From the NCBI GenBank assembly GCA_051294905.1, contig CM119371.1, forward strand, positions 15,624,001-15,688,000: a stretch of 64,000 nt of DNA, read 5' to 3'. This stretch comes from Botryllus schlosseri (Eukaryota). Below, piece by piece: positions 37,966 to 63,983 of this stretch (positions are counted from its first letter, which is position 1; each line of letters starts with the position of its first letter). Under the pieces are notes generated by a model that saw only the letters and a list, made by a program, of their open reading frames with translations, was not told the origin of the DNA and made no database searches. A program made the position numbers and the translations under genes.

Positions 37966-38041
37966 ATGTTACTGAAGTCAAATTTCAATCTCAAGATTTT
38001 GTTTTGCGAAGTTGTGGCCGTGCTTATTACGGCTTCGACAG
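37966..38041 (+). CDS. Mosaic gene exon 1: putative signal peptide
   Basis: MLLKSNFNLKILFCEVVAVLITAST(G), then donor GTATGT in phase 1; joins GEAVSCYVC, giving a plausible cleavage after GEA. Least certain exon. Confidence 0.6.
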
Positions 38042-41000
38042 GTATGTAGTTCGAAGTCAAGTTTGGTGGTCGTAAAGCATGCAGTCCGAGTAGGCCTTAC
38101 ACCAATGTCTGTATATATGTCTATGTCTATAAGGATGAGAGAGATATGCTCCATAAATATATAGGATATTTAGATATATCCACACCAAAAATATTATTAT
38201 GATCTGGTGCTTTATTGGTGTGCAACTTCTATCTGCTAACTAATTTAATACGGGATGAAGATTGATTCAAATTGTTTCAACTTTTAAACGAAGTGCCAAG
38301 CGACACATATTAATCTATGCCTACTGGTAGCGATATAGACCAGAAAAGCTAGACGACGAGACCTAGCTATACGGCCAGAGTTGGTTAGTTACCAAACGCT
38401 TGATTATCGTATTTGATTACTCAAGTGTGCAAGTTGCGACGATTCTAATTTAGAAGTATTCAACTTAGATAAGCATATCTTCAAAATTTCGTCGAGCGTC
38501 ACGTGAAATCGACGTATCAATATGTAGGGTATCCCCTGTATAGCACAATTAGGGTTGCAATTAAAACGAACCTGTTTAAAACAGGGCCCTTGTTTGAAAC
38601 ATGGCTTTTGTTTTTGTTTTTTAAGCCATGATGTCACGAATATTCAACTGTGCCGTCATAATGGATTGACAGGGACAATTGAAAATACAGGGTAAATATC
38701 ACTCCTTTGACGAAATATCTGTACTATTATGCTGTTGAACCGACTATTTTGAGGGTTCCAACCCTCCCATATCGACATACGTCGGCTATATAGGTTGGTA
38801 GTTGTCCGTATAGGCTCATGCAACATGTTTTTTGGAAAGTATTACACCATTATGGCCTAATTTTACAACTAAAAAAACACAATTTTTTTTATGAAGGCAG
38901 TTGTTTAAAACACTGTTTAAAACAATGGTTCTCAACCTTTTTCACCCGGCGGACCGGTAAAAATTCGAAAAATATTTGGCGGACCGATGGACCATCAAAA
39001 ATCATCCCAAAATGTCCAGTCATGAAACCGTTTTTTGGACTATGGTACTAGAGAGTGACGTTTTGAGAGTTTGTTCGTAATTAATATGTTCAATGAACAA
39101 TGTTGTTGATAGTGGTATTCATGTGATTTTACGGTAATTAGTCTGCTGAGTCGAAGTAACATTCTTTTTCCCAGATAAACGTGCTGGTGCCGAAAGTTGA
39201 TTACCGTCTTTCGCGCCGAAGGCTGTGAACTAATCGACTACGGCACTACGCCAACTCGAATAATATTCTTCTATTCGACAAGAAGCGTTTCTGAGTCGGA
39301 CCAAGCCCCTTCTCGAGCTACCTTGCCCATTTGCCATTACCGCCAGACTTACTATGAATGCAATACGCTGCTGAAAAACACCTGATATTAGCGATATGGG
39401 ATCATCCACAAAATGAATGAATCGAAAAAATTATTGTGTAAACTGCGCGGTTTAGCGACGCAGTTCGTATTTATCGGTCGCCTTGTTTTTTTAGGCGTGC
39501 GGAATGAGAAGCAAAAAATAGATTTGCGGGCCGGGCCAAAAGTTTAAACTATATTCCGTGGCGTATTTTATCTCTAAAAAGTACACAGTGAATTACATTG
39601 TTAACACAAGCTCTTAGCTAAGTGGATGTGTTAAATTTAGGCTATAAGAGAGTGAGGGTTAATTTACCAAAAAATATTTCGATTCTTTCAGTGACAATAT
39701 GCAAAACCATGTGAAGCACGAATCACTCTTAACTAAGTTAAATCACATTTCTCCATACTCTATTATCTATGGAGACGTCAAAATGTATTTGGGATAGGCC
39801 CTATTACAAGCTGGTCTTGGTCCTGGGCTGTGAGTAGCGTGAAATCCAGCCTCGCTGTTTTGAGAGTTTCGCTGGCAAGTGCTTTGGAATCCGCGCTCTC
39901 TCGGCCTCAGCCAGCAACGAGTGTTAGTATTTCAGTGCGTTTTTCTCATAATGCCGATTCAGAATATATCTCCAAAAACTGCTACCTGCTCACCACAAAG
40001 AAAATGACTCGTTTCCCTCTCATTCGAGCAAACAAATATTGAGTGTTTAAGTCATTTTAAATGTCAGCCTCCATCTTCCGCCTCTATTTTTAGCATATGC
40101 CTGATCATCGTTTTGGGTGACCTCTGCTCACTGCTCACGTGCACTGATTGACTTGTTTTACGGTTTATGGATTGAAAACGCACGTCATAACAATATAAAT
40201 CACAGACCGGGTAATTCGTGATGTAACAATGGCAACCCAAAGTTTTGAACTATCTGAAGCCGTTACTTTTTACTATATTTGTTACGGTATACTTTGCTAT
40301 ACAAGCAGTATTTTGAATCCAAATTGTACGACCTATACGTAGGCTGCATAATCACTAATGTACAACGCAGATGAAAAAGCAGGATTTAAAGTTTGTTTGT
40401 TTTGAGGTATTCATGGTGTTTGCCGACTACTATGGTCATTTACACCAGGCCGATATTCTTCTTATGTTCCGTAACTGCCGACTTATAGCACGGCCCACCT
40501 CTAGGCTTTTGTAAGACACCGCACAACACTTAGGCATCGGAATTCGGAAGTCAACCTCGGTCGGATTCGAACCCGCACCCATTTGGTGTTGCAGCCGCGG
40601 ATTATACCACTGCGCTATCTCGCCACTGTAAGATTTAAAGTAATCGCATTTCCGATTCAGTTTATGTAGCCTTAGGTTTTAGTTCACACATTAGTATTGA
40701 AAAGTAGGTTTTATGTTCTAAATTCCAGGCTACTTTTCTCGGGTCAGTAAGAATCGCGTAACGAGCCCCATTTCGCCCGAGTGCCGTATGCTTTGCCCAG
40801 GTCTAAGTTAAATCGAACATGCCAGGGCTAATCTTACCTCACGAAGTTCTAAATATGTTTAAATTTTTAATTTAATAAATTGACAAGCCTTCAACATTTT
40901 GCATCTTGAAATTAAAGTATAAAATTTCAAAATAACTGGCGGACCGGCGGTTGAGAACCACTGGTTTAAAACATGTTTTAAACAAAGTGTTTTAAAAGAC

Positions 41001-44000
41001 CGTTTGTTTTAAATGCAACCCTAAACACAATCAAGCAAAGTCATTTTGAAATCGCATCGTAGCAATTCATAGATTCATTATCAACGGGGAAGCATTTGGA
41101 CTGGTTAGAGTTTGTGCGTTGATATTAGAGCTAGAAGTTTTCGCCAAAACTTACTGTTTTACCTGTCCTCTACTTCCACTTGAGTGCTAACGATACCTAC
41201 TTTCACCACCTCTGTATTCGCATTATAATTGTATACAACTATAACTATGATCATGTCCGCGCCTTTACATTATTTAACGTGATAATGTATATTTCAGGTG
41301 AAGCTGTAAGTTGCTATGTTTGTACGGCGACGACATTACCCTATTTGTGTTTCCCGATGGAATGTTCGTCTGGCGCTTCTTGTTTCACCCAAGCATGGAT
41401 TGAAAACGGACAGAGATACTGTATGTTCCCTTCTTATTATACCGTTATTTTTAGATGTCAATCAAATCATATCGATTAAGCTATCTATCATATGCAGAAT
41501 GAGCTAACGATGGAAACTTACATGAAAACTGAGCAAATATCATTATACTCGGAATATTACCGAATGGTATATTTCGCATCAGTGACAACAACATCAAAGG
41601 CGAAATTTGTGGGTGAAATTGAAATTATCATCTTTTGCGATGCATTTGGTGGATCATTGAAAATTGATGATGGGATTCTCCTGTTATCGACAAATAAAGT
41701 GTACGCATATAATACTTTTCTTACTAAACTACACCGCCGATCCAGGAACCATAGCGAAACTGTTATATGCAGGTCGCATGGAGAATATAATACTGACAAT
41801 GCATCAAATGTATTTGGTCACATTCCCGTATCACTTCTGACTCAAAGAAGGTCCCAGACAGACAGAGAAACCCGAATCACGATTTATTCTAACGTCCGCG
41901 TTTACAGTTAAATCTTTTGTATTCCTCATGACGCATACGCAGAGCTAGCGCCAAATTACGACTAAAACAAAGGGATCATAGACATTTGCCAACTTATATT
42001 CCGTTGGTAGAATCAGTGTTTTAGCGGTTGAATTCAAAAGACTAATCTTCGAATTTTTGCCAAAATTTCGCTGTTTGCGAATAAAGGTGTTGCTAGAATA
42101 TAATCCTATAATGTAATTATTGTGTATACAGGATTGATAGATAAAGTATTCAAGCGAAAAGCAAGGGCGTGCATTTTGAGGAAATATATTGGAACCGCGA
42201 ACGGTTTGAAGGTCTGAATCCGGCCTGCAAGGCAACTTGAGTTTAACACTCCTGGCCTAAAGCTGTGTTTGCGAAAATGTAGAGCAGATAGGGCTGTACG
42301 AGATTTAGACATTCCAAGGATGGAAATAAAGTATTGAAACTATGTTTGTCGTTGACAAAATATTACTCTCTGAAGGCACATATTTGATTACTCGTAATCA
42401 TCGGGTTCCTCTACTCGAGTCGAATCATTACATTTGATACTGGAAACGGATTCGATTACTCGAATTGTTGTTCCCAGCCCTATCCGTGAATTTCCATTCA
42501 ATATCAAAGCTATACCATATCGCCAAGTGCTTAAATCGTCACCCGAATTCTTGCTCTGTGCGGATAGCTGAGCGAAAATAGCACATATGTTTTTGGCCAT
42601 ACTTTAGGCCACAATTTCCGCTGACCATAGATAAGGATGGTATTTTTCGTCATTATTCCGACTGGCGCTCCAACTTTTCAATTGATGATCAAAGTCTACC
42701 GTTGGAAGAATCATCGGACGTGACATTATCTCTAACGTGTTCGCCGAAGCACATAAATCCATTCGAGCCCAATGGGTTATTGCTTTGATGAAGTCCGCCA
42801 ATTGCGTAATTCTATTTTGATATCTGTAGAGTTGAATCACGGGATTCGGCTTTGGTATGGTTGTGTGTAATCCTGTAAGTGGGGATAACATCGATCATTA
42901 GCCTTTTTTGTCGTACCAAAGCAATTCAGAATAGATGGTGCGTTTGCGAGAAGTGTATGCGTTCGCGCATTGGAAACGGGGCTATAGGGAAGTCGTTTAG
43001 AAACATTCCGTGCCCCGTGGAGATAATATAATACTTATTCACTTATGTGCAACCTTAACATTTGTAGTGTGTATGAAAATTATGAATTTGTGTGGTGGTC
43101 GTCGTCGTATTGGGTAATATGCAGAGGTGGCCAACGTACTCAGCGTTGCTACTCATTAGAAGTCGAAGTAATGCCATAACTTTCTACTCCATTGCAATTG
43201 AAAGTTGCAATTTCAAGGATATGTTAAAACAACTTCAAGCAGACGTAGGGAATGGAGGTCTCATAAGTCACAGGTACTCAAATTAATAGTTTCATAAAGT
43301 AGATGCGGTCGAGAAGTGGCATAAGCAGTTAATCATGGGTGTCTACTGTCTACTTCTGGCATTCCCAAATGCAATTTAGCGACGAACGCAAAATGAAAAT
43401 TGATGCTAGAAATAGGTACAGTTTCCGAAAATAAATTCAGTTACCGTGATACAGGGGCTGTTGATTGTGGTAGTCATGGTATTTGTCGACTACTATGATC
43501 ATTTACAACAGGCCCATATATTCTTTATTATTATTCCGTATCTGACGACTTGCAGCACGACCCTTGTAGCGTCTTTTCAAGAATCCGCGCACGCGGATTA
43601 GGTGGCGAGGAGAGGTTTCGTCAAAATAAATTATACTCGTTACTGAACGGGCTGTAACTGACCTAAAGCACACGTTTCACACATACTAACAACACACTTC
43701 ACCTTATACATATATCACCTTCTTTAGGAGTGTATGTGACTTATTCATGTCAACAAGAATTGGTGTGAATGCCACGAGTCGGGCGAGAAGCGCCCCTGAT
43801 TTGTCTGCATCCTATGCTAATGTGGTATAATCGTTCGCATAAAGTGATGGATTCAGTTCATGCTCATAACCAGCATTCTTGATTATGTTCAAGATATATT
43901 TGGACTATTAACGCGTAGTGTAGTGTAACCGGCAATCGAATGAAAAGGGCGCATTTTAGTGGGCCACGTATATTGAGTGTGGTGTGATAGTAATTGATTA

Positions 44001-47000
44001 TGCGAATCACAGTCGCAGTAATCAGATAAATGAATGAGAGAGAAAGCCGTTCAGACAACCTCATAGCCAGTCTTGCCCAAAGGAAAGGCGCAATCATCAT
44101 TCCCGAGTCTAGGCCGCGCCCACATTCGGGTTCGCTTCATGCTCAGGCCGCGAGGTTCCATCTCGTCTTCGCGGGGCTCGGATTCGCAATTTAGAACAAT
44201 CACGATCACTCGTTTTAGTGGTTTATTCAAATAGTATAATCTACAGTGCTTAAAACATAGGAAGCATGGTTGTAAGATGGCGGTCATCTAGTATTGGGTG
44301 GGTATTATTTCCGATTGGATTTCTAAGGTTTCCGGTGGTCATGTTTAATGTCTATTGGTACGTGACAGGATATTGTTTTTATATATATTTTTGGGTCGAA
44401 TAGGTCATATTTTTTGTGACTCAGATGAGTCCGGTTATGTCTGAACTTTATCCATGTATTAGGTCTATGTTCTTCCAGGGATAGTTTCGCTTATTAAAAT
44501 TTTGGATATATTCACACCTTTTGCCGAATTTTTTTCCTATTTTGGTGACTGCGTCTTCTCAGGTATTCCATGGGGTCTTGTATTCTGGGTGTGGTTTGGG
44601 GACCGGTGATGGGTGGTTGGTTGGTTGGGTGGGTGGGTGTTGGTATGGTCTATTGGGCGGGGTGGGGCGTCATGGGTTGGTTTTATTCATGGTGCGGTAA
44701 ATACAAAATAAATGCATATAGTTCAATGTATAGCGAAAGAATGGTATCAGCGAAAAAAGGTATCAGCAGTGTGCATGCGAGTCATATTAGTATATGCCCA
44801 TTATTAAATATATTTCAATAGTCGGAATTGCGCGCATTGTGAAAGATCCGTCGCGCGTTTCGCAAAGTTCGCGTTTCTATGTGTTCCTCCTCTTCTGATT
44901 TGCACCCATTTCATTGTATAGCGACAATGTGGTATCGATAATACGTGCGAGTCATATTTAGTATATGCTCGTTATTATAATATTTAGATGTAATACAATA
45001 ATCGGAATTCGCGCGCATTGCGGCGTAATGCCACCCGTTTCGAAGAGTTCGCGTTCTTTTTTTGCGTCATCGCGATATTCGTGGTGTTTCGGTTCGTATT
45101 CTCTTCCGTAGTTGTGATATACGATTATCGATATCGGCGTCACTGGCATATTGATTTAATATGTCAAGTGCCGTCTTCCACTTCCATATCTCCGTCTTCA
45201 TAATGAGGAAGGCTTTCGTTACTGCTGCTTCATGAGGTCCGTCGTATCGGTTGTGGTATATTTCTTTCGGATTCGTGAATATGTCCGCTCTCAGCGCGTT
45301 TTCGACGACATCTAAAATAATATAGAAAATTTTTCTATATGTCGGGCATTCCGTATAGATATGGTGTAGGGTCTCTATAGGATTTTTGCACAGCTTGCAG
45401 TTGTTTTTCAGGGTGGCACCTTGTCGGTTTGCGGTCCAGCCGGCTTGTTTCTTTCGAGAGCCTGTGAAATAACTTTCAGTTGTTATTCTGTAGGAGATTT
45501 CACGTTCTCTATTGGTGGCATAATGTTTGATACTAGGTTGATATAACCATATTCTCATCCAGTTTTCCACCTCTTCATCTTTGTGTTCGGTTTTCTCTTT
45601 TATGAGCGATTCGTATATCGCTTTTGGGGGGGCGTTGTGCGCTTCTTCGAGATCTTGTTGCAGGATATCGTAGGTTACCTTTTCGCATTGCCAGTTGTAG
45701 GTCGGTGTTGGCCTGTGGGGGCAACTGTTGTTATATAGAGCACTGTTGATAGTTCTAACCTTGGTTCCGAGGCTGTAAACAGCCTCGGCGTGCCAGATTT
45801 CTTTGGGTTGGTCGAGTCTAGCGATTTCTTGTAGCCTTTTTGCTTTCCGTGCTCTTATTGCTGACTCGATGTCCGGCATCCCAATGCCTCCCATCTCTTT
45901 CGGGCGGATCAGTGTGTGTCTGCTCTTTTGCTCGAGGGATTCGGGGCTCCACAGTATATCGTATACTATTCTCTCGAGTTGCTTTTGTTGTTGTTTCTGG
46001 ATCTGGTATGGAAAGTATATATACGTAATTTTACTTACTATATATGCATTGATCGCCTTCATTTTTCCAATCCAGGTCAGCCTCTGCCTCTTGATGTTGT
46101 TGGCACTTTTCTTCACACTTCCCATTAGCTTGTCGAAGTTTGTATCACGAGCTTTCTCTCCATGGAATATCCCGAGTATTTTGATAGTTGTTTTGGCATA
46201 CTGGGCGTGCCTGGACCCTTGTAGCAGCTGTTTTGATCTTTCGTTAGTTGGCAGGATTTCTGTTTTGTCGGCGTTTATATCTTGGCCAGTAACTCTGTAT
46301 AGTCTCGAAAATTCATTAAAGACTTCAGTGATTGATTCAATACTGCTTATATACAGGGTTATATCGTCGGCAAATTGATCGATTTTATGCTCTATGCCTC
46401 CAATACGTAGGCTTTTGATGTCGTGGTTTGTTTCTATCCGGCGTGCTAGTGGGTCCGCACTTATAGCGTATAAGGTCATACTAAGGGGACATCCTTGTCG
46501 GATGCCCCTTGTATAGGCGATATTGGCTACTTCATAACCGTTTACTTCAATCATGGCTTTGGGATCACGGTATATCGCTTTGATAGTGTTCAAAACCTGA
46601 TGGGAGAGCGGTAGCTTGTCTAAGATTTCAAATAGCATGTTATGGTCTACCTTGTCAAAGGCCTTGCTTGCATCGATTGTCATGATGTAGCCTTCGGTTC
46701 TTTTTTCTGCTTGGTATCTTAGGATCGCAGCTACGTTGTTGTGGATTGTATCCATTTTCCCTCCGGGAAGTCCGGCTTTCTGCGATTTGTTTATCGAGGT
46801 TTCAATCTCCTGTGTTAGTCTGTTATTGAGAATGGTTGCCATTATTTTATAGTCGACATTTAAAAGGGAAATAGGTCGCCAATTCTTTAATTCAGTTTTT
46901 TCTTTCCCTTTATGGATTAGTATAGTTCTGGCTTGGTTCCAGCTTTTGGGTAGTTTCGAGAACATAATTGCGTTATTAACAATTTGTGTTAGTCTCCTAC

Positions 47001-50000
47001 CGATTGATTTCCACAAAGCTAGGTAGAACTCGACCGTGATGCCGTCGGGACCTGGCGATTTTTCTCTATTCATGCCTTTGATTACTTGCAGCACTTCTTC
47101 TTGCTGTATTGGTGATATATTCCGTTCGTGTTGTTGTTGTTGTGTTCCTGGAATGTTGTATCCCGACAGATATTCCATTCGCGCAGCTTGATTGTTTGCA
47201 GGCCGTCCCTTCCATAAATCTGTATAAAAGGATTGAATCTCATTAGCGATCTTATCTCTTTCTGTTGAGATTGTGCCATCTTTGAGTCGTATTTTTTTGA
47301 GGTCAGCTGTTTCCTTCCTCTGCCTGAATTGCTGCCAAAATTGTCTTTGGTTTGGCTTTTCTCCTTCAAAAACATCACAGCGCGTTAGCATTTTTAGTAT
47401 TCCTTCTGATTGCTGATATCGTATGGTATTGTCTATGTTTTTGTTCTTATTTATGCCATACCTTTTGCTAACATTTGCAATTTTTGATTTTAGCAGGTCC
47501 CACCACTCTTGGATGGTTTGGCTCTTCCAGATTTCGGCCTCTTCTGTTTTGACGAGGTTATCTATAATGTCCTTGTACACGTTATCATCTAGTAGTTGAT
47601 AGTTGCATTTCCACTTTTTCTTTTTCCATTTTGTTTCTGGCTCTATGTTGAGTTGTATGAGAGGACTAATATGGTCGGCCACGTAGTTGTTCTCGTGGCC
47701 TGCATATGTTACATATTTCATCAGTTCGTTCGTGACATAGAGTCTATCAATTCTTCTGCTATTTTGGTGCGTTATGTGCGTAAATTCTTCCGCGCGTTTG
47801 CGTTTACTTCTGAAGGAATCGACCAGGTCATTTTCGATGACTATGTCTTCAAGTAGTCTGGTGGTAGGTTTGCGCAAGAATCTGGACTTATCTTGGGAGT
47901 CTCTTTTATTCATTATTTCATTAAAATCACCTCCTATTATTATGGGGGTCATTATATTTGTCAGTTCATCTCTGATTTGCGTAAAGAAACTGAGTCTCGC
48001 ATCTTCTTTTCTTGGACTAGACCCTGATGGGGCGTATATATTTATCACGGATACTGGACAGTTATCAATTTCAATGTCTAGGCGTTGGGCTCGATTTCTT
48101 ATTAGTATGGTATGACGAAAGGTTTTGCCTTGGAGTTCTTTTTTAATCAGGATTGCTGTTCCATGGTATTGTCTTCTTGCGTTTGTGGTGTTGGTATAGA
48201 TAGTATATCCCAATTTTTTTGCCCATGATTCGACCTGACTATAGTCCATTTTGTGGGTTTCCTGCACTAAGAGTATGTCCATTTTCGATTTTTTGATATA
48301 TTCGGCTAGGTCGTCCAATCTTGCTGATATTCCGTTGACGTTAATGGATGATATTTTCATTGTGGGGTATTGTTGTGGAATTAGAGGTATCTGTGTCTGA
48401 GGAGCTGTCGGTATCACTCGGACTGTCTTCTCTCTTCTTGCTTTTCTTCTCTAGTGGTTTTGGTTCACTATCTGTTGAGCTGTGTGCTCTTTTGGATGTC
48501 TCGGATATAATCGAGTCGCATTCGAAGTCGTTTTCGTTTTCATCTACCCTGATAGTACAGATTGTCTGATCGCCTTCTCCTTCCTCGCTGGGAGGGGAGG
48601 TAGGCGTTTCTTGGATTTCTTTTTCCTCAGTATTTAGCTTGTCTACAGTATGCGCAGTTTGCTTCTTTGCATCTGCATTCACCTTTGCTACAGGTTGCTT
48701 TGTATCCTTCTTTCTGGGTGGAATAGCTGGTGCTTTTGCTATCTCGTTCCACCAGTCAGTTGTTCTTTGCCTGCGTTCTGTTCTGGCATCTATTTTTGGA
48801 GGTGCACTTGTTGCTGGGAGTCTATTGCGTTTTTGCACCTCGTTTATAAAGTTTGCCAGCGCTGGCTGTTGCTGGTTTGCTTCTTTCGGAACGGTCTGCT
48901 CTTCGCATTCTGTTTCGATATGGCCCTTGGTTCTGCACTTTTTGCAGTAAGGTTCTGCGGGGATCGGGCAGTCCTTTACGATGTGGCTCGTGGCCTTGCA
49001 TCTATAGCATTTTTTGGTATACATATCCTCTGCTGTTTTTACGTGGCATGTATAGCCGTCTATAATCAGGTACTTGGGCAAGTATTCCTTGTTGAAATCT
49101 TCGACCCAGACGTTGGTGTAGCCGTTATATATGTTGGTGTTTTTTCGGTAGACCCTTGTCATGTTTGCAGTTTTGCCGAAGCAATAGCTATTTACTGTGG
49201 CTTCTACTGTTGCTTTTGTTGTTTCCGCTGGTATGCCTCGTATTATAAGATGTGTGGCCGGAAGCCTCGGTAGTTCTATGGAGATGTTTTCAAAGTGCCT
49301 GGCTTCTGGGTTCTTCTTGAGCTTTTCGTATATCATGTCCCTGATATTTTTGCCGTCTTTGTCGTTATAGAATGTTGCTACCCAGATTCCTCTTCTAATT
49401 TCGTATAACATTTCGAGATCTTCTACGCATTCTGAAATGATTTTACTGCATTTTAGCTCGTCATATACAGTATCCCAGTCTATGTTTTCTGGCCCTTTCA
49501 CAAAAAGTGATCTCGGCCTTGCGTGCTGATAGTTTCTGTCCTTCAGTGGCACTTTGCCTGCTGCAGCTGCATAGTTCCCATTTTTTGCTGGTAATATATC
49601 CATAGTATTCGGTAATATATCCATAGTATCCACAGTTTGCATTGTATATATATATTCGGTTCGGCTATAGTCCGAGATGCAGTGGGCGACGCCCTTTGCT
49701 ACGATGAGATTCGCCTCCGCTACGATGAGACTCGCGACACGTTCGACACACGCTTCTGCAATCTAGATCCGCACTCACTCTCGTGTTATCGAGACGGACC
49801 CAATGTATCACATATCAATGCTAGTTCCATCACGATCAAGATACATACTATAGATATGATCTCTATAAGTATGATCTTGGTTTGATGAGTCCAGTCGCGC
49901 GGTCATACTCGAAAAATAATACATAGCTTTAATGGTGAGCAGAGCAGAGCATCGCTCTCTCTCTCTCTCTCCCTCTTCTTCTCTCTAACATTCTTTGCTG

Positions 50001-53000
50001 CCCACATGCGGATCGCTAATTTCAGTCTCTAATCTGGGAGAGTTGAGACTGCTCTTGCATACGGATGGTAATATGAATTTTATCACCCAACAAGAATTTC
50101 TGCTAAGCATGTGATTATAAGTTTGAATAATAGACGAACGGGGTTACCTACGAGATTGCACGTGACAAATGTATAGCTATACATGGGCTATTTAGCCCGG
50201 TCGTAATGACGATTTCACAAATAAAGATGATGCAAACGTTCCCCAAAACTATTTCCTAGATGACAAAATTGAATGTGCGAGAAATATGTAGCTTTGCTTA
50301 ACAACTGAAACTGTAACCGCTAGAGTATAACTACTGAAAGAAAATAAACCTATACTTGCGCACTCCGAAAAGCAGAATTACTTCGTTATTCGCCTCTGCG
50401 GCACACTCGCTATGAAATAGTACCAATAATACTGAATAGGTTTCAACACGTTTCCAGACCAACGCGGGTGCTTCGCTCCGAACGAATTGGGCAATTGTGA
50501 AACTCTGTCCAAGTATTTCTGCAGCAACACCAACGCATTCCACTGCTGCAAAGGGGATAATTGCAATAGCGAAGATCCGCTGCTGAACTGGGGTGATATA
50601 TTGTTTGTTTGTTTGTTTTGTGGTATTCATGGTGTTTGTCGACTACTATGGTCATTTATACATCAGGCAAATATCCTTCAATTTTCCGTGACTGCCGACT
50701 TATATCACGGCCCACACATCTGCGGTTAAAGTTCGCATAAGCACCAAATTTCCGATAACTTCTGGTGCGAACAAACACAGAAGCACTATGTATGACTGAT
50801 ACAAATGCGATTATTTGATATTTTCAATGACCAGCACTATGATTGCATCCTCTACATAGATAGAAGGTTAATGTAACGATAAATCAACCAAGAGGCAGTG
50901 ATATGACTAGCAGCGACTTAGGATGATACTAAAGAGCTTCTTGGAGGTGCAGAACTCCAATATACAATTGAATAGTATATTCATAATGAAATGAACCCGT
51001 GATGCGCTGGGAGAAAAACTCACCCTTGATTCATCCCCTGAAACCTGATTCAGAACAGGCAAAGGTCATGAATTCTGCCATTGGTAAGAATTGGTTAGAT
51101 AATCTTGTTTGTGTGAAAGCTTATGCTTATCGAGACGACAAATTTCATTCGCATCGTCAGGAGAAGCCGTTCGCACTTTCATTGGTGTGTCTTGTAGTCG
51201 ACATTTTTCAAAATACGCCAGCCAAGTCTGTACCAACAAACGGAGTTCGTGTACCATCTAAAACAGTGCATTCAGATTAAGCACTCTCTTCGCCATGATT
51301 GTTTGAAATTTCATGCCGCTGACGCAATACTTTGTGATATGATTGTTTACCTACCACTATGTTCCTTTCCATTCTCTACTAATTGCTGACGATTACCCTG
51401 ACGAGTGTCAGCCGAAAATATTCGAATTCATTTCAATATGAATACACTATTCAATAGGACGATACTCTTGTTGAATGCTTTTCAATGTAAAAATGACGCT
51501 CGAAAACGTATGTGAGTATTTAAGATTTTGCTATCGCACGTTCGGCACGAATATTACTGTTATATATATAAGCATTTGGTGCGGAGCTATCCTGATACAT
51601 ACATCTCTGGCCTATATATTGTGATCAAGGGAATAGACCCAGATCCCGGCCGATGAGGATATGTTAAGTTGGAAGTATCTAAAACTGAAGCAGGTATGGA
51701 TTCACTCGCACTGCAGCATGACTTTGATCGATATATTGTGATGTAATATACAAAACTGTTGTTCAGTAACATCTGTTTAAATACCTATATATTTGTTATA
51801 ACGTCATGACAGTTTTATTCGACGTGGAAGAAAGTATTTCTTTGGTGAAATTCAACATGGCTTTGGTAACAAACATTTTATGCTCCGACTGCCAATTGTT
51901 CCCTACATCTATCCGCAGCTGCAATTTCAACATTTACGATGGGTCTCAGAAAATCAAAGACCACGTAATCCTGAGTGAGGTCATGCTTAATACAAACTTT
52001 AAGTATTGTACGTACACCCGATATAGCCCAACAAACACTTCTTAACGATCGCTCACTAATGAAATATCAACTCCTGTGCTGAAGTGAAACATCACCATTG
52101 TGTACTCATCGTTTTAAAAGCTCCGAAGATACCAACAAACTTGGTGAGTTACGTGACTGATTCGTCGGTTGAGCTGTCGTGGGATCCCGTCTGCATTGGA
52201 GATTATCGTTATGACGTTGAATATGCAAAATTGCTGGGCGGAACAACTGCAGGTCAAGACCATACAACAGTTGCAGCATACACGAACGCGGTGAGTAGGC
52301 ATATATGTGTATTTGCTACTACGCAGTTGCGAGAAAGTCAATCACTAAAAACTTGATGGAATCTGTCCTGCAGCTTCGCAACGGTTTCAAGTAGTCGAAT
52401 GGAGTATTGACCGCAACGATTATAATCGAGTAGCTCGAGTGGGCATTTTCCAATGCCGAAGTTATGACCCTTCCGCCTAGGAATTTTTTGCCGTATCGAC
52501 GCTTATATCCCACCTTGAGACTATAGTTGAGCCATTTACTGACCACCCCTGACTGTTAGTCCTAGTTCCAATCCAGTAAAGCCGGATATTCGTAGCGGAC
52601 AGAAACCATGCTTTAGCGATACATCACATATATTTACCAGATCGAAGTCGGTTCTCTGGAGTCCGGAACTTCGTACCTTTTCTGGGTGAGAACATATCAC
52701 GGCGGAGTTTTCAGTGAGGCGCAGGCTGTCGAGGCCTCAACACTTGCGACACCATCAACAACAGGTCTGTGAAATAAGATAGGGTGAAGACATCCCACGA
52801 GAAGTTGTCGTGCCGGTGTTTTGGAAGCATTCAGCTGTCAATGTTTCTTAACCCTAGTGTTTCGTGGAGGTCAAGTCACACACTCAACTCATAGACATGA
52901 TTTGTATGATACATATATGATACGACCGTCTTGGCCATCATTAGTTGCAGGCAATTAGGCACGACCAGTAACAGAATATTGATTGTTGTGGTATAAGTCG

Positions 53001-56000
53001 TGTGTAGTGGGAGTGGCGCACGCGGGAAAAGTTAGGGTTCGAAACCGAAACCACGACCTTCTGAAATGCCAATTCTATCTCCAATATTTACAAGCAATCT
53101 AATTAAGATACTGGTATTACGCTGTTACGTTTCGGTCGACCAATACAATAATACTTTCCAAGGTGAAGCCTCGCATTTAAACACCCTGTTGTTGCACAGG
53201 TCATTTTGTACACCAGTTATCTATGGTAACGTATTAGATGTCTAGTAAGATGTGTATTGTGGTGGGTTCTTGTATTCATGAAAATTTGGGGTTCCGCGAA
53301 GGCTTGCAGATTAACGTGAGTGTTCCGCGGGTTTCTAATGGTTAAGAACCACTGACTTATATACAGAGGTAGTTAAAATGGTCAGCGATGCCAATCAAAT
53401 AGAAGTTGAAGTAACGCTGAAAATTTTAACTCCGTTACAAGTTGCTATTTCCAAGACATGTCAACATTACTTTGAGTGGGAGTAAAAAATGAATGGCCTG
53501 AAAATCACCAGGGTTTGCATATATAATAATTAGGGCAAGTTTTTGCAACTTTTTTTACAGCTTCCGGCAGCTTCCTAAATACTCGTAAGATATGTAGAAT
53601 GCTGTTTCAAGCTGATTGAAGGAATCTTATAGCGAAACTTTTTGCAACTTTTGTCCATTTCTTTCATGCAACTTTTTGCAACATTTTGCAACGTTCTCGA
53701 TTTTTCATGAAAGTATTTTCGATTCTGGTGAAATACACGGCCAAATTCGACTGAAACACCGTAAATCAGCACCGAAGTAAGGCTTTGACGGGTATTTCGG
53801 GAGCTGAGCCGGAAAATTGACCTTTTTTTAGTCAATCTGGGAAGTTTACCTTTTTTTTTAGTCAACCGAGCAAAATGTGGTCAAAATGCAACTTCTGCAA
53901 CTTTTTTCAATAATAAATGCAACTTTCCACGGATTTAACTGCAACAAAAACTTGCCCAAATTTATAATATGTAAAATACTACATTTAGCTGTTAATCGGA
54001 GATGGGTACTTTCGGAATTACAGGTTGCATCTGCACGGATAACGTAAAATCATTAGTGGCAGTACAAATAGATTTAATCTTCGAAGTATATTGTAATTGG
54101 CTGTCCCAATTCCGTTGTGCGCGAAAGCGTAAATAGGTCACTCTCGAAGCCACAACCGTGACGGCACAGGCAGTCTGCGACGCACGTGTTCTCAGAGCCC
54201 GCATATTGAGGTCGGCACGCTCGCGCTTCAGTCGTAAGATAGACAATTGGCTCCATTTCGCTTCATTTATTCTTTCTATTTCTTATTGAACCGCAGTATC
54301 ATTTGAACCTGATAAATCTACAAGTTTCTGACCACTATTACTACTATTTGGCTGTTATGTTCTATAAAAGAAAGTTACTTTGATCTGCGTGTGTGATCAG
54401 GATTGCAAGAGTACTCAGAGCGGTCATCAGTCAGTCAACTAGTGCGTACAACGGGAACTGTAGCTGTAGCGTCGACTCCAATCAGGCACTATACCAGCGT
54501 GTCTTGCAACAAGTCGTTGCAGCGACATCTACATATATTCTGATGCCGTGATACATCGTCTATTTCATGACATTCTTGTGGTAATGTCACTCTTGAGAGT
54601 GATGCAAACCTATCCAGAGGTACCTTCTACTTTCCAAATCCAAATAGCAATAATTAAGTCATTTTTCCTAAGCAATGTTCAATAAAAGTGGTATTCCGCT
54701 GAAATATAATTGTGACGCACATCGTGTACGGAGGATATCTATCTGACAACCTGCATGCGGATAAGTAAGTTTGTTTGTGGTATTCATGGTTTTCGTCGAC
54801 TACTATGGTCATTTACACCATGCCGATATTCTTCATTTTATTCCGTAGCTGCCGACATGTAGCACTGCCCACTTTTATGCGGTTATAAGACACCGCTTAA
54901 ACCAGTGGTTCCCAACGTTCCCCCCCCCCAGGGGGCGATTTGGCGGTCTAGCGGGGCGAAAATGACGAAGGGGGCGATAGGGGGGCGAAAACGGACAAAG
55001 GGGGCGACGAGGGGCGAAAATAGCAAAGGGGGCGATAGGGGGGCGATGACGCGTTAAAATGATGGCTATATTTGAGTCAAGTCGGAGAAATGACCTTTTT
55101 TTTTAGTCATGCCACGAAAATTCAGTTGCAAAAGTGTAAAATTCGCCATCGAACGGCAAAGTTGACCTTTTTTTTTTAGTCAACCCGCCTGTGATTACAG
55201 TTTGTATACCGATTTTTCGGTTCACAAAATTTGGGGGGCGATGATTGGAGTTGAGCTTGAAAAGGGGGCGATGAGTCGAATAAGGTTGGGAACCACTGGC
55301 TTAAACCAAGGACGGGCAACATACGGCCCGCGGGCCGGATCCGGCTCGCGAAGGGATTTTGACCGGCCCGCGGAGAGTTTCTACCGTGAAAGTGAAATTC
55401 TAATCTGAAAGTACTATTGGATAGTATATTCATATTGAAATTAACCCGAATATTTTCGGCTGACACTCGTCACGGGTAATCGTCAGCAGCCAGTAGAGAA
55501 TGGGAAAGAACATTGTATGTCAACAATCGTAGAAAACGTGCATCACGCTCGTTGAAAAGCTCGCCCATGACTCATCCGCTCAAGATTGATGCTGAGCCAT
55601 TAAAGTTTAGAAACTATGCCGCTGGCAAGCATTTGTTGGATAATCCCGCTTGTGCAAAAAATTATCGAGACGACAGATTTCGCGTCATCGGAAGGGGTGG
55701 TTCACACTTTCATCTGTGTGCCTTGGAGTGGACCTTCATCAAAATACATCAGCCCAGGCTTTGTCTACAGAAGGAGTTCGTGTACCATCTTAAAATGGTA
55801 CATTGAACGCTCTCTTATTTGAGATGATATTCCAAGCAGGGAACGTCATATTTTGTGATACGATTGTTGATATACACTGTTCTTTCCAATTCTCTACTAG
55901 TTGCGGACGATTACCCCTGACGAGCGTCAGCCGAAAATATTCAGGTACATTTCAATATGAATATACTATTCTATTGTATATTGAAGTTCTGTACCACCAA

Positions 56001-57980
56001 GAAGCTCTTTAATCTGAAAGTATTGACAAATTTTATGCGTCACAGAATTCATCCAAGTTTGCCAATCTGGGAAAGATGGATATGAAACTACTTGCTTTGT
56101 TCGGGTATACATATATTTTCGACCGTGGACATTAACGACACAAGGCTACGTTCCAATATAACTGATGTCAATGTACATTGTACAGTCTTCACGAAGGGTT
56201 TCTACATACAACATGCAACCAGCTTCCAAAGAACTTGTTGACAACTTTGACCGGCCACAGATGTCCGATTGACTTCAACAGCTAATAAATTCATTAAATA
56301 GGCTACTGTTTTGGTGTTTATGCTTTAAACTTGATGTTGACATTATATACGATTTATTCCTTATATTGGTGGATAAATACGCGATTAATGCAGATATTCT
56401 GTAATCTGGCCCGCCAAGTGCTTCATTTTCCCATATCCGGCCCGCCGACCACAGAAGTTGCTCGCCCCTGGCTTAAACGGATGAGGTGGCGAGGAGGAGC
56501 CCAGATAAACCACCAGCTCTTACGTAGGAATTCTTACAAGGATAAGCAAGTAATTCCTGCAATTCCATTCCAGGGGCAAAGTGCTGGGAAACCGATAGGT
56601 ATTTCGAAGCTGAAAATTACTTGAAGACATGTCCTAATTCCGGTGACTGGTGTTTCACGCAAGCCGAATACTTCGCGAACACTTCGGAACGGTATTATAT
56701 ATATGGTTCGTCGTGTCAGTACGCGATTGGCGCAAATATTTTGAAGAGTAAAGTTATTCGCCTGTGTTGTTTTTCATGACGAAGTGCGAATTGTTGCTCA
56801 AGTCGAAGTAGAAGTAACGCGACAAATTTCTACTCTACGACAAGTATATGCTTCGATAAAATTAGCAATATCGAAGACACGGCAAACTATACTTCATGTA
56901 GTAGAAAATGGTGATCTGAAATGTACTCGAGCACGTATATCTTAAAAGTAGATTTGATATAGTTGGTTGCATACTTTTAACAGTTAATCGGAATTGCAAG
57001 ATGTATCTTTCCCTCTATCGTCATTTCGATAATTTTTTTATCAAATCAATACACCACGATATCGTAATATAAGGAGAAGATAAAGAAGTGGTGCCGAAAC
57101 AACTTGGAGCAGTCTTTTAATCAGACATCCAGTGGTCTACAGCGTGTATAAATAAGAGGCATGCACACTGTATTTCAGAATGGATAACATGTAACGAATC
57201 AAGATGATCAGACACTCTACGAAATTATACTCTGTTACCTAGACACGGTAGGGATGACGCCGAGTTGTCATTACAATTCCGTTCGTAAAAGTGGTGCAAG
57301 CTTATCCCAAAACTAATTTCTACTTTATAAAATCTAAAGTGTCGATAGTAAGTAGTATTTCCACAAAAAAATTTTTCGAATAGAGGTATTAGTATTCTCA
57401 AAGCATAACCACTCGAGTATCGAATAAATTAGAAGCACTTCGTTACTGGTCACCTCTGAGTGGGTTAACCATTCTCATCGGCCATGAAATTAAAACACTA
57501 CTAGTTAAATCGTCAATACATTGATCACGAGAGAAACTTTACTATAGCTATCAGCAAAACCGAATGGTGAACTATTTCGTAATTTGTTCGACATATTCAG
57601 GCTTCATTCGAGAGGTTGCATGAGCGAATCTGATTGTCAGAAATACGTGGCATCCAATGACAAGGCTTGCAAGCCTGGAGAGATCGGGACGGTGTGCCAC
57701 TTTTGCTGTAAAGGGCAATACTGTAATACAGTCGAGTGGACCTACTCTGGTAAGTACACTCTTTCTGTCCATTGATACCATGAAAAGTATCAGTTGCTAC
57801 ATCTAATATGCGTCTACCTACAATGTACATGTTTCCCGACAGGATTAACCTGCGAAAATATACCCGTCGAGGAACGTCTACAATGCGGACGGAGCGATAT
57901 GCCTATAGCGGCTTGTCTGCAACATGGGTGTTGCTACGTGCCGTCCAATGATACAACGGCGTGGTGTCATCACGGAAAAT
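37966..57980 (+). CDS. Multi-exon gene for a secreted/cell-surface mosaic protein: signal peptide - LU - FN3 - LU - trefoil (8 exons found, 344 codons, 3' end not found)
   Basis: Exons 37966-38041, 41298-41420, 50458-50592, 52121-52290, 52641-52764, 56574-56691, 57601-57749 and 57843-57980. All introns are GT-AG; phases 1,1,1,0,1,2,1 splice into one stop-free frame. Confidence 0.8.
38923..40963. mobile_element. CAGTGGTTCTCAACC-family hAT element nested in copy 2
   Basis: Ends CAATGGTTCTCAACC and GGTTGAGAACCACTG; perfect TSD GTTTAAAA (38915-38922, 40964-40971); GGCGGACCGG subterminal motifs. Confidence 0.85.
40393..40631 (-). mobile_element. Full-length tRNA-derived SINE
   Basis: Minus strand has A box TAGCGCAGTGG (40607-40617), B box GGTTCGAATCC (40563-40573), a tRNA-unrelated body and a (CAAA)n tail. 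10-bp TSD GATTTAAAGT (40383-40392, 40632-40641). Confidence 0.85.
41298..41420 (+). CDS. Mosaic gene exon 2: first half of LU (three-finger) domain 1
   Basis: Acceptor ATTTCAG; (G)EAVSCYVCTATTLPYLCFPMECSSGASCFTQAWIENGQRY; donor GTATGT. Confidence 0.85.
43459..43615 (-). mobile_element. Diverged copy of the same SINE 3' region
   Basis: GTAGTCATGGTATTTGTCGACTACTATGATCATTTACA matches the SINE 3' end. Confidence 0.65.
45067..48417 (-). CDS. Retrotransposon ORF2: APE endonuclease + reverse transcriptase + C-terminal Zn knuckle (likely start MKISS at 48360)
   Basis: APE motifs SINVNGI, VQETH, GGDFN, RIDRLY, DH; RT motifs KSPGPDG, WRPISLLN, DASKAFD, GIRQGCPLS, FADD; C-terminal CKLC....ETLHHIYTEC. 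No stops over 1116 codons. Confidence 0.97.
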   Translation of the reverse strand: MIPTAPQTQIPLIPQQYPTMKISSINVNGISARLDDLAEYIKKSKMDILLVQETHKMDYSQVESWAKKLGYTIYTNTTNARRQYHGTAILIKKELQGKTFRHTILIRNRAQRLDIEIDNCPVSVINIYAPSGSSPRKEDARLSFFTQIRDELTNIMTPIIIGGDFNEIMNKRDSQDKSRFLRKPTTRLLEDIVIENDLVDSFRSKRKRAEEFTHITHQNSRRIDRLYVTNELMKYVTYAGHENNYVADHISPLIQLNIEPETKWKKKKWKCNYQLLDDNVYKDIIDNLVKTEEAEIWKSQTIQEWWDLLKSKIANVSKRYGINKNKNIDNTIRYQQSEGILKMLTRCDVFEGEKPNQRQFWQQFRQRKETADLKKIRLKDGTISTERDKIANEIQSFYTDLWKGRPANNQAARMEYLSGYNIPGTQQQQHERNISPIQQEEVLQVIKGMNREKSPGPDGITVEFYLALWKSIGRRLTQIVNNAIMFSKLPKSWNQARTILIHKGKEKTELKNWRPISLLNVDYKIMATILNNRLTQEIETSINKSQKAGLPGGKMDTIHNNVAAILRYQAEKRTEGYIMTIDASKAFDKVDHNMLFEILDKLPLSHQVLNTIKAIYRDPKAMIEVNGYEVANIAYTRGIRQGCPLSMTLYAISADPLARRIETNHDIKSLRIGGIEHKIDQFADDITLYISSIESITEVFNEFSRLYRVTGQDINADKTEILPTNERSKQLLQGSRHAQYAKTTIKILGIFHGEKARDTNFDKLMGSVKKSANNIKRQRLTWIGKMKAINAYIVSKITYIYFPYQIQKQQQKQLERIVYDILWSPESLEQKSRHTLIRPKEMGGIGMPDIESAIRARKAKRLQEIARLDQPKEIWHAEAVYSLGTKVRTINSALYNNSCPHRPTPTYNWQCEKVTYDILQQDLEEAHNAPPKAIYESLIKEKTEHKDEEVENWMRIWLYQPSIKHYATNREREISYRITTESYFTGSRKKQAGWTANRQGATLKNNCKLCKNPIETLHHIYTECPTYRKIFYIILDVVENALRADIFTNPKEIYHNRYDGPHEAAVTKAFLIMKTEIWKWKTALDILNQYASDADIDNRISQLRKRIRTETPRISR
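48341..49642 (-). CDS. Retrotransposon ORF1 (gag-like nucleic-acid-binding protein with two CCHC knuckles), 433 aa
   Basis: CYRCKATSHIVKDC and CKKCRTKGHIETEC knuckles; low-complexity S/D/E/K-rich C-terminus; overlaps the ORF2 start. Confidence 0.9.
   Translation of the reverse strand: MQTVDTMDILPNTMDILPAKNGNYAAAAGKVPLKDRNYQHARPRSLFVKGPENIDWDTVYDELKCSKIISECVEDLEMLYEIRRGIWVATFYNDKDGKNIRDMIYEKLKKNPEARHFENISIELPRLPATHLIIRGIPAETTKATVEATVNSYCFGKTANMTRVYRKNTNIYNGYTNVWVEDFNKEYLPKYLIIDGYTCHVKTAEDMYTKKCYRCKATSHIVKDCPIPAEPYCKKCRTKGHIETECEEQTVPKEANQQQPALANFINEVQKRNRLPATSAPPKIDARTERRQRTTDWWNEIAKAPAIPPRKKDTKQPVAKVNADAKKQTAHTVDKLNTEEKEIQETPTSPPSEEGEGDQTICTIRVDENENDFECDSIISETSKRAHSSTDSEPKPLEKKSKKREDSPSDTDSSSDTDTSNSTTIPHNENIIH
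50458..50592 (+). CDS. Mosaic gene exon 3: second half of LU domain 1
   Basis: Acceptor TTTCCAG; (Y)QRGCFAPNELGNCETLSKYFCSNTNAFHCCKGDNCNSEDPLLNW with the CCxxxxCN LU signature; donor GTGATA is non-consensus. Confidence 0.85.
50602..50740 (-). mobile_element. 5'-truncated SINE copy directly behind the exon 3 donor
   Basis: (TTTG)n tail followed by TGGTATTCATGGTGTTTGTCGACTACTATGGTCATTTA, as in 40393-40631. Confidence 0.8.
51060..51460 (+). mobile_element. Penelope-like element 3' fragment (GIY-YIG C-terminus + 3' UTR)
   Basis: SAIGKNWLDNLVCVKAY...RDDKF (frameshifted) and DNA homology to 55590-55975. Confidence 0.7.
52121..52290 (+). CDS. Mosaic gene exon 4: first half of FN3 domain
   Basis: Acceptor TTTTAAAAG; (A)PKIPTNLVSYVTDSSVELSWDPVCIGDYRYDVEY...; donor GTGAGT. 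Confidence 0.85.
52641..52764 (+). CDS. Mosaic gene exon 5: second half of FN3 domain plus short T/S linker
   Basis: Acceptor TTTACCAG; IEVGSLESGTSYLFWVRTYHGGVFSEAQAVEASTLATPSTT (L.PGT.Y.F.V.A-type motif); donor GTCTGT. Confidence 0.8.
53510..53975. mobile_element. MITE-like element with TAGGGCAAGTTTTTG-type inverted ends
   Basis: ATAATAATTAGGGCAAGTTTTTGCAAC vs GCAACAAAAACTTGCCCAAATTTATAAT; internal GCAACTTTT repeats; TSD not resolved. Confidence 0.5.
54769..54894 (-). mobile_element. SINE copy interrupted by two tandem MITEs
   Basis: SINE 3' sequence up to TAAGACACCGC. The sequence after 56478 (GGATGAGGTGGCGAGGAGG) matches the continuation seen in the 43459 copy (GGATTAGGTGGCGAGGAG). Confidence 0.7.
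54903..55298. mobile_element. hAT-type MITE (GGGGCGA subterminal repeats)
   Basis: TIR CAGTGGTTCCCAAC; perfect TSD GCTTAAAC (54895-54902, 55299-55306). Confidence 0.88.
55407..55980 (+). mobile_element. Penelope-like 3' fragment with an inverted copy of its own 3' end
   Basis: AAGKHLLDNPACAKNYRDDRFRVIGRGGSHFHLCALEWTFIKIHQPRLCLQKEFVYHLK is the C-terminal motif of PLE GIY-YIG domains; about 55407-55535 is the reverse complement of about 55855-55975. Confidence 0.8.
55911..55947 (+). ncRNA. Candidate minimal type I hammerhead ribozyme in the Penelope 3' UTR
   Basis: TTACCC-CTGACGA-GCGTCAGCC-GAA-AATATT-C-AGGTA: CUGANGA and GAAA cores, palindromic stem III, UUC triplet; the 1.1 pair is mismatched in this copy. 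Related copies at 51393-51428 (+) and 55441-55480 (-). Confidence 0.5.
56574..56691 (+). CDS. Mosaic gene exon 6: first half of LU domain 2
   Basis: Acceptor TTCCATTCCAG; (G)AKCWETDRYFEAENYLKTCPNSGDWCFTQAEYFANTSE(R); donor GTATTA; the phase-2 end matches exon 7. Confidence 0.75.
57601..57749 (+). CDS. Mosaic gene exon 7: second half of LU domain 2
   Basis: Acceptor ATATTCAG; LHSRGCMSESDCQKYVASNDKACKPGEIGTVCHFCCKGQYCNTVEWTYS; donor GTAAGT. Confidence 0.88.
57843..57980 (+). CDS. Mosaic gene exon 8: trefoil (P-type) domain
   Basis: Acceptor TTTCCCGACAG; (G)LTCENIPVEERLQCGRSDMPIAACLQHGCCYVPSNDTTAWCHHGK, six Cys in trefoil spacing with R..CG, GCC and WC; donor GTAAGA. Confidence 0.9.
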
Positions 57981-58358
57981 GTAAGATATCCTCACATGCA
58001 CTTCGTTGTAGCCAAGTAGGTTGCCAAAGTATGTACGGGCGACATTGAATCACAGCCGATTTGAATAGGAACGGAGTCAGAGGTGATCAGTAACAAAGAA
58101 CGCCATTTTTTTGGTGGGGGGGGGGGGGTACTGGCGTAGGTTTAGCCTAGACAGTACATCTGATACTTAATGCTTGGATAACTGCTTCGTGGTACAAAAC
58201 TAAAGATTGCCTTCATCAGAATATCCATGGTAATAGTAGGCCTAAATTAATTATCACCTGAAGAATTTCCGGGTGGATTTGTTCAAGAGTTATCACCACA
58301 GTAAAGGGATTCAAACAGATACAAAAGTGAAACCAATATGGTATTGTATGACGTAACC

Positions 58359-63899: not shown

Positions 63900-63983
63900 T
63901 ACAGCTAAAATTTCTGACTCGGCCCGCCAAAATATTTTCTGCTTCTCATTTGGCCCGCGGAGAAAGATAATTGCCCACCCCTG
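63900..63983 (-). repeat. hAT MITE end (CAGGGGTGGGCAA family)
   Basis: CTTCTCATTTGGCCCGCGGAG...AATTGCCCACCCCTG is the reverse complement of about 2613-2660; partner end not found. Confidence 0.6.

Follow-up and report, generated by a model that had tools for sequence, protein, structure and literature searches.

A 64,000-nucleotide stretch of the Botryllus schlosseri genome (assembly GCA_051294905.1, contig CM119371.1, here C1; C1:15624001-15688000, referred to below as the window) carries on its plus strand a gene whose ten exons, the last two lying just past the window end, encode a string of extracellular modules followed by a membrane anchor. The order is signal peptide, LU domain (LU1), fibronectin type III (FN3) domain, second LU domain (LU2), trefoil domain, transmembrane helix and cytoplasmic tail. 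The exons are judged, with good confidence, to form one real protein-coding gene, and the same confidence, held jointly for the whole gene model, attaches to its product being a type I single-pass membrane glycoprotein with one transmembrane helix of about 27 residues. The main argument for a single gene comes from a second ascidian, Styela clava, in which a protein 50% identical to this one is encoded by a gene that shares all nine intron positions and their phases.

The gene model was rebuilt by hand from the letters of the plus strand and then translated. The window has the composition of eukaryotic DNA, with about 41% guanine plus cytosine (GC) and many transposon open reading frames (ORFs). 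The gene extends from window base 37966 to about 1.6 kb past the window end; positions in the directly adjoining sequence (L004) are given below as window equivalents, position 480 of L004 corresponding to 64480. Its parts are as follows.

Exon 1, 37966-38041, plus strand: ATG with A at -3, 25-residue leader, donor GTATGT; ends in phase 1.
Exon 2, 41298-41420, plus strand: first half of LU1, with the CxxC and three further Cys; ends in phase 1 at the loop 2 tip.
Exon 3, 50458-50592, plus strand: second half of LU1, with the CC-x4-CN box; ends in phase 1.
Exon 4, 52121-52290, plus strand: N-terminal half of FN3, with the single conserved Cys136; ends in phase 0.
Exon 5, 52641-52764, plus strand: C-terminal half of FN3 and a Thr/Ser/Pro linker; ends in phase 1.
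Exon 6, 56574-56691, plus strand: first half of LU2, without CxxC; ends in phase 2 at the loop 2 tip.
Exon 7, 57601-57749, plus strand: second half of LU2, with Cys spacing C-x5-C-x10-C-x8-C-xx-CC-x4-CN; ends in phase 1.
Exon 8, 57843-57980, plus strand: complete trefoil (P) domain, donor GTAAGA; ends in phase 1.
Intron 8, 57981-64479 (in-window part 57981-64000), plus strand: exons 9 and 10 follow just past the window end.
Exon 9, window-equivalent 64480-64646 (L004:480-646), plus strand: acceptor TTGCAG, transmembrane helix and start of the tail; ends in phase 0.
Exon 10, window-equivalent 65496-65576 (L004:1496-1576), plus strand: tail and TGA stop.

By direct reading, all introns of the gene start with GT and end with AG, and the splice sites are intact in every case (18/18). 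Exons 1 to 8 total 1033 nt, enough for 344 codons and one extra nucleotide, and contain no stop in frame; the phases after them run 1,1,1,0,1,2,1,1; every domain border is in phase 1, and the introns within domains are in phase 1 (LU1), phase 0 (FN3) and phase 2 (LU2). A preliminary description of the window had proposed eight exons spliced in frame across 20 kb, and the coordinates, GT/AG borders, phases and 344-residue translation of that proposal were all reproduced; its account of phase-1 domain borders and of the internal phases likewise agrees with the sequence as read. It had also anticipated further exons past position 64000. These were located by tblastn with the C-terminus of the Styela protein followed by splice-site reading, and are the exons 9 and 10 listed above. 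At the junction of exons 8 and 9 the terminal T of the former joins AT of the latter to give Tyr, the same residue as at that position in Styela. The spliced ten-exon ORF encodes 426 residues and a stop.

The Styela protein (P0002, 431 residues) is held by NCBI as "uncharacterized protein LOC120337675 [Styela clava]", and its gene lies on OZ123521.1. The spliced 344 residues align with it from end to end, leader to trefoil, at 50% identity (E 9e-124); within this, the exon 2 translation is 57% identical and the exon 6 translation aligns to P0002 residues 213-250. When mapped to its own locus (GCA_964204865.2), P0002 resolves into ten exons with phases 1,1,1,0,1,2,1,1,0, and the two genes agree, at homologous residues, in the position and phase of nine of nine introns. 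Examples of such shared splits, with a slash marking the intron, are LLNW/APK, ANTS-x/, S/GLTCEN, HHGK/YP and DVYA/xPK.

The resemblance thus covers the order of signal peptide, LU, FN3, LU, trefoil, transmembrane helix and tail, the number of exons, the numbers of Cys in the four domains (11+1+10+6) and the motifs of the tail. The two species differ in copy number and in setting. The Styela gene is a single copy in the 27-kb locus examined and spans 7.2 kb, whereas Botryllus has five copies, with introns that are far larger and filled with transposable elements. The Styela gene is flanked by an integrin-beta gene, immediately upstream, and by Piezo; in Botryllus, Piezo is on another contig (C5), and three integrin-beta genes lie at C1:16.17-16.35 Mb, about 0.4 Mb past the gene family. 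Styela synteny was considered as a guide to the ancestral copy and set aside as too loose, with Piezo elsewhere and integrin-beta some 0.4 Mb off. On the protein alignment and the common gene structure, the window gene appears to be a homolog, and probably a co-ortholog, of Styela LOC120337675.

The other Botryllus copies were sought by DNA and protein searches of the 495.5-Mb assembly, with 50 kb fetched around each paralog and the exons rebuilt. All five copies lie on C1 between 14.69 and 15.80 Mb (about 1.1 Mb); two are intact and three are broken. Exon 4 has five genomic copies, every one on C1, and tblastn with the P0002 C-terminus finds exons 9 and 10 in the window copy and in all four paralogs.

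Window copy, C1 15.66-15.69 Mb, plus strand: intact, 426 residues.
P2, C1 ~14.85-14.87 Mb, plus strand: intact, 425 residues, splice sites all present, same ten exons in order.
P4, C1 15.75-15.80 Mb, minus strand: start codon ATA, 5-nt deletion in the trefoil exon, ~13.5-kb insertion in exon 9.
P3, C1 14.71-14.73 Mb, plus strand: exons 1-2 absent from the fetched 50 kb (~20 kb upstream of exon 3), 3.7-kb element in exon 9.
P5, C1 15.33-15.34 Mb, minus strand: exons 1-2 missing, exon 3 reduced by half, exon 8 truncated in its 5′ part.

The insertion in exon 9 of P4 (C1 ~15751100-15764600) has TG...CA ends and a 5-bp target duplication, GTCGT, and looks like a long terminal repeat (LTR) element. 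The 3.7-kb element in P3 (C1 ~14725650-14729390) has 17-bp terminal inverted repeats (GGTGGATTGCACAGATG). Exon 9 was struck independently in these two copies, at sites about 20 nt apart.

Homology between the copies continues through the introns and far downstream at 80-94% identity, and the family therefore grew by segmental duplication. The window copy and P2 are about 96% identical in their exons and 87-94% identical in the non-coding flanks. Over the 957 nt of the ectodomain, they differ by 0.022 nonsynonymous substitutions per site (dN) and 0.12 synonymous ones (dS), a ratio of 0.18; the coding sequence is under purifying selection. The most diverged domain between the intact copies is FN3, in which 24 of 294 nt differ. 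A lone fragment resembling exon 2 (89% identity over 35 of 40 residues) occurs at C1:15036226-15036330 on the plus strand, remote from the exons of the family.

These comparisons bear on the proposal that the exons are shared out among at least two independent neighbouring genes, one of them perhaps Ly6-like and another a trefoil gene. Junction reads that would tie the exons together were not found in the RNA sequencing (RNA-seq) runs described below, and trefoil exons, at least 50 of them, are spread across many chromosomes of the genome. Against this, the phases are all compatible, the assembled exons contain a single signal peptide, a single transmembrane segment and a single stop, and the internal exons are without start codons or leaders of their own. 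The same ten exons, moreover, occur in the same order in P2 and in Styela, where NCBI records one 431-residue product. A division into separate genes is accordingly considered extremely improbable.

An exhaustive phmmer search with the exon 7 translation as query, covering 1.84 billion representative proteins, returned five matches. The sole full-length relative in that collection is P0002, to which exon 7 aligns over residues 253-299 with 56 bits, in keeping with the lineage restriction suggested in the preliminary description. The window protein itself is absent from the word-index protein collection, because a query with P0002 matched P0002 only. A literature search found no paper naming the LOC120337675 locus or combining trefoil, FN3, Ly6 and ascidian. 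The earlier claim that the combination is undescribed holds to the extent that no paper describing it was found, and gives way to the extent that NCBI already holds the Styela homolog as an uncharacterised prediction. The protein is composed of known modules in an undescribed order, is already in the database as an unnamed prediction, and is not a new kind of system. Another phmmer match to exon 7 is P0001, a 147-residue fragment mis-called on an ENA metagenome scaffold of 1021 bp (L027); the exon on this scaffold is 57% identical to exon 7 and ends at the same NSG border, and the scaffold is probably stray DNA from another ascidian-like animal.

For domain assignment, the window exons were scanned against Pfam one by one, and intact domains were tested on the Styela ortholog P0002 as a proxy. 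Exon 8 matches Pfam Trefoil (PF00088) over profile positions 1-42 of 43 with 40.5 bits against a cut-off of 21, and scores 38.9 bits in a genome-wide six-frame profile search. Its six Cys (302, 313, 323, 328, 329 and 340) are spaced C-x10-C-x9-C-x4-CC-x10-C. The corresponding domain of P0002 reaches 41.1 bits in Pfam and matches porcine spasmolytic polypeptide in a search of PDB sequences.

The FN3 domain is divided between two exons that give complementary matches to Pfam fn3 (PF00041): exon 4 to profile positions 3-39 (15.9 bits) and exon 5 to positions 53-76 (13.3 bits). Scanned exon by exon, each is under the cut-off of 25, and together they sum to about 29 bits. In P0002 the intact domain exceeds the cut-off, at 31.9 bits, and matches fibronectin chains in the PDB (E 6e-8). 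The trefoil score, the complementary fn3 halves and the end-to-end alignment with the Styela protein place the exon model well outside anything chance would produce.

LU1 (Cys within residues 31-102) has 11 Cys, FN3 has one (136), LU2 (213-290) has 10 and the trefoil has six, giving 28 in the ectodomain. LU1 displays the full LU signature, with the CxxC, all ten ancestral Cys plus one extra, and the ending CC-KGDN-CN. LU2 displays it in a variant form: its 10 Cys end in CC-KGQY-CN and do not include the CxxC or the loop-1 pair, and alignments place an additional Cys pair in loop 3. Counting in the translation bears out what had been noted of these two domains, namely one spare Cys among the 11 of LU1 and 10 in LU2 without the N-terminal CxxC. 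Typically, two exons code for an LU domain; phase-1 introns lie on both sides of the pair, and a further intron separates its members at the loop 2 tip (PMC6600238). LU1 (exons 2 and 3) and LU2 (exons 6 and 7) match this structure: all flanks are in phase 1, and the internal introns fall four residues (LU1) and six residues (LU2) ahead of the Cys that closes loop 2.

The half-LU exons of the window, scanned singly against Pfam, gave no match. In P0002, LU1 scores 23.1 bits (whole protein) or 16.9 bits (domain alone) with Pfam CD59, under its cut-off of 33.9, and 17.9 bits with Toxin_TOLIP, under 21.2; LU2 scores 17.1 bits with UPAR_LY6_2, under 31.5, and 16.3 bits with Activin_recp, under 20.9. 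The families listed for these two domains are all three-finger families, apart from one row at noise level (Hyr1, E 1.4). In the exhaustive phmmer search, exon 7 also matches P0003 (40 bits, E 2.7e-5), a protein with four LU repeats that do exceed the Pfam cut-offs (CD59 48 bits, Toxin_TOLIP 39 bits). The AlphaFold model of P0002 LU2 has a predicted local distance difference test score (pLDDT) of 64, and 72-85 in the core; nearly all of its top 50 Foldseek and VIA matches are three-finger proteins. The scores are weak, the best being that of Lynx2 (Foldseek E 0.049, probability 0.97; VIA Z 4.7), and others matched are Lypd6, Lypd6b, PSCA, snake toxins, uPAR, GPIHBP1 and the ectodomains of BMP and activin receptors (BMPRII, ActRII). 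A search of the ESM Atlas returned generic FN3 look-alikes only, at no more than 0.81. One alignment of the exon translations with P0002 (A1) had several pieces scattered and was not used for folding or profile searches. Overall, the three-finger fold predicted for the LU domains is supported but not proven.

At its two ends the protein bears the features expected of a type I membrane protein. The 25-residue leader of exon 1 is hydrophobic, resembles a signal peptide by eye and aligns to the leader of P0002. In P0002 the trefoil domain is followed by a short stalk, by a hydrophobic helix of considerable length and by a basic tail; in an unaided model the helix (residues 358-400) reaches a pLDDT of 95 in the membrane-spanning part. 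In the window protein, the highest Kyte-Doolittle hydropathy for a 19-residue window, 3.98, falls on residues 361-381, which are followed by RKRQREKQK. The designation "extracellular protein" in the preliminary description accordingly fits the ectodomain, from signal peptide to trefoil, and needs amending at the C-terminus, where exons 9 and 10 add the transmembrane helix and a cytoplasmic tail of 42 residues. This tail is basic and has the motifs GSYDVYA-x-PK and ISTV-x-R-x-x-YD in common with Styela. Two conserved tyrosines within it are candidate phosphorylation or sorting sites, going by the sequence comparison. Immunoreceptor tyrosine-based inhibitory and activation motifs (ITIM, ITAM) and YxxPhi motifs were looked for in the tail, and none is conserved between the window protein and Styela. 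Conceivably, the juxtamembrane Cys384 could be palmitoylated.

The frame is open for 22 codons beyond 57980 and then stops, so that the main product could be pictured as a secreted protein of 366 residues, made by leaving the exon 8 donor unused and reading through to the TGA at 58046-58048, with the transmembrane exons optional. The read-through stop, however, is lost in P2 (CGA for TGA), and the read-through stretch of P3 contains a 17-nt deletion, whereas the GTAAGA donor is kept in five of five copies and the exons for the transmembrane helix and tail are conserved in the paralogs. Styela, too, continues with Tyr as in the splice of exon 8 to exon 9, and then with a transmembrane helix and a homologous tail. 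A secreted main product therefore seems very unlikely, and the membrane-anchored form of ten exons is preferred.

A number of observations weigh against this preferred gene model and the domains assigned to it. The signal peptide assignment comes from visual inspection, and a Glu lies within the hydrophobic core. Neither LU domain reaches a curated Pfam cut-off, and the absolute scores of the fold matches are low; the alignment used in modelling LU2 included the LU repeats of P0003, with a possible bias toward a three-finger fold, and full-length P0002 folded without an alignment has a pLDDT of 42, with confidence confined to the transmembrane helix. The Styela entry used for comparison is in turn an uncharacterised gene prediction. 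Two further points arise from transcription, for which reads of four bulk RNA-seq runs carrying the same species label were mapped to the span 52100-58099 (exons 4-8), with 6-13% of each run sampled. Exon depth was at most 1 and no splice joint at introns 4-7 reached the threshold for listing, so that the junction reads named as a check in the preliminary description did not appear in these samples. Lastly, the four exon 7 reads carry T at 57661, the base of four of four paralogs, where the window copy has C; A at 57689 and T at 57727 are further bases diagnostic of the window copy.

The reads give faint evidence that some member of the family is transcribed, with nothing pointing to the window copy. 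Because 6-13% of each run was sampled, silence of the window copy is not shown. Five read sets in small shares were not used; they scale with run size and were taken as low-coverage DNA.

It could be that the window copy, though it looks intact, is a duplicate without transcription, an incipient pseudogene, and that the work, if any member is expressed, falls to another copy, such as P2 at C1 14.85-14.87 Mb. Three copies have already been disrupted out of the five, the exons of the window copy attract hardly any reads, the few exon 7 reads show the paralog base at 57661, and its introns are the largest in the family, swollen by a long interspersed nuclear element (LINE) and a 4.4-kb insertion. 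Yet the ORF, start codon, 18 splice sites and stop of the window copy are all intact, and its dN/dS against P2 is 0.18. The T at 57661 could be an allele, and a gene restricted to a tissue or stage would escape 6-13% samples of four bulk runs. A silent duplicate is held to be unlikely, and the window copy continues to be read as a real protein-coding gene.

The features described above suggest a cell-surface binding or receptor protein, a role put forward by analogy. In other proteins, trefoil domains recognise glycans or mucins. The loops of LU domains are protein-binding (PMC6600238). The protein would thus reside at the cell surface, where its LU loops and trefoil domain may bind an extracellular protein or glycan partner, with FN3 serving as a spacer; the tail motifs GSYDVYA-x-PK and ISTV-x-R-x-x-YD might then couple binding to the cell interior or to sorting. 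The mucosal role envisaged in the preliminary description is not supported. The extra Cys of LU1, residue 80 or 88, might form an interdomain disulfide with Cys136, the only Cys of FN3; this is proposed in view of the even number of Cys in the ectodomain and of the conservation of the two residues in Styela. The architecture itself probably arose through the shuffling of phase-1 modules. A wider reading, conceivable if rather doubtful, is that of an ascidian-specific family of surface receptors in which a mobile LU exon pair was shuffled with FN3, trefoil and a transmembrane/tail cassette, and in which rapid birth and death (five copies, three dead) resembles that of recognition or immune receptors; a cue from outside, either glycan or protein, would be sensed by the trefoil and LU domains, and the unusual disulfide between LU1 and FN3 would brace the ectodomain.

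Similar features can be found among known proteins. Multi-LU members of the Ly6/uPAR group (uPAR, C4.4A/LYPD3, CD177, TEX101) also have more than one LU domain per chain. As in the present gene, two exons code for each of their LU domains, with phase-1 introns on either side and a further intron between them at the loop 2 tip, one LU domain has lost an ancestral disulfide, and the genes form small duplicated clusters (PMC6600238). In those proteins, however, the chain consists of LU domains only and is anchored by glycosylphosphatidylinositol, whereas here FN3 stands between the LU domains and a trefoil domain, a transmembrane helix and a tail follow. The lost disulfide differs as well: it is 7-8 of the N-terminal LU domain in the Ly6/uPAR proteins, and here, judging from alignments, the loop-1 (2-3) pair of the second LU domain.

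The receptors of TGF-beta, activin and BMP, together with BAMBI, are likewise type I membrane proteins with a three-finger ectodomain that ends in CC-x4-CN. They differ from the present protein, which has two LU domains as well as FN3 and trefoil domains, a tail of 42 residues and no kinase domain. No kinase or BAMBI match was found in P0002 or its tail, and a sequence relationship to TGF-beta receptors does not rise above noise. Membership in this group was rejected, given an Activin_recp score of 16.3 bits against the cut-off of 20.9 and the lack of a kinase or BAMBI-type tail. Trefoil proteins (TFF1-3, and the modules of ZP1/ZP4 and GH31 glucosidases) have the same six-Cys P-domain in a single exon with phase-1 borders; here, by contrast, one such module occupies a membrane-proximal position beside LU domains in a transmembrane protein.

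A 2026 survey of 387 invertebrate genomes, with no tunicates among them, describes lineage-restricted LU mosaics and reads them as independent origins (PMC13719153). The LU partners reported there are Kunitz, C1q, fibrinogen-like, Ig, MAM, thioredoxin, permease and G-protein-coupled receptor parts; FN3 and trefoil are not mentioned (PMC13719153). The window gene resembles these non-standard proteins in combining LU with unrelated extracellular modules and in being restricted to a lineage, and it adds a chordate case to their architectures. A 2019 review had considered it doubtful that LU domains act as shuffled mobile modules (PMC6600238). Two LU exon pairs alternating with FN3 and trefoil between phase-1 borders, in two ascidians, provide a clean counter-example to that doubt. 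In addition, a Styela gene model of no assigned function gains an independent check from a second species, and a small family with fast turnover is defined, which ascidian single-cell atlases could place in a tissue.

Two large elements occupy introns of the window copy.

LINE (Tx1/L1-like) in intron 2, 44199-49838 (narrower limits 45067-49642), minus strand: two long intact ORFs of 433 and 1116 residues; most of the intron's 9 kb.
Insertion of ~4.4 kb in intron 8, 59612-63982, no strand assigned: repeat-rich, with direct repeats ~1.5 kb apart; absent from P2.

The limits of the second were read from the blastn alignment of the window with P2, which breaks at 59611 and resumes at 63983. This insertion contains near-identical open frames at 60826-61095 and 62349-62630 and its GC skew is strongly negative. 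Repeat copies in intron 5 (53500-56100) attract hundreds of partly fitting RNA reads in four of four runs, on both strands and 95-99% alike; this signal was rejected as gene expression, the partial matches to transposable elements being attributed to a repeat family transcribed elsewhere.

The family is flanked by intronless BTB-BACK-Kelch genes. Within the window, 16178-17779 (plus strand) is an intact ORF of 533 residues, and 33931-35594 (plus strand) contains a BTB ORF and an overlapping Kelch ORF whose split looks like a frameshift. A BTB-Kelch copy, 63% identical, lies downstream of the gene (L004 ~6772-8322, plus strand) and recurs downstream of P2, P3 and P5; the segmental duplication unit therefore carries both genes.

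Trefoil modules have multiplied greatly in this genome: at least 50 exons over the Pfam cut-off occur on at least 11 contigs, several of them in tight arrays such as those at C5 1.17-1.20 Mb and C13 8.92-8.95 Mb.

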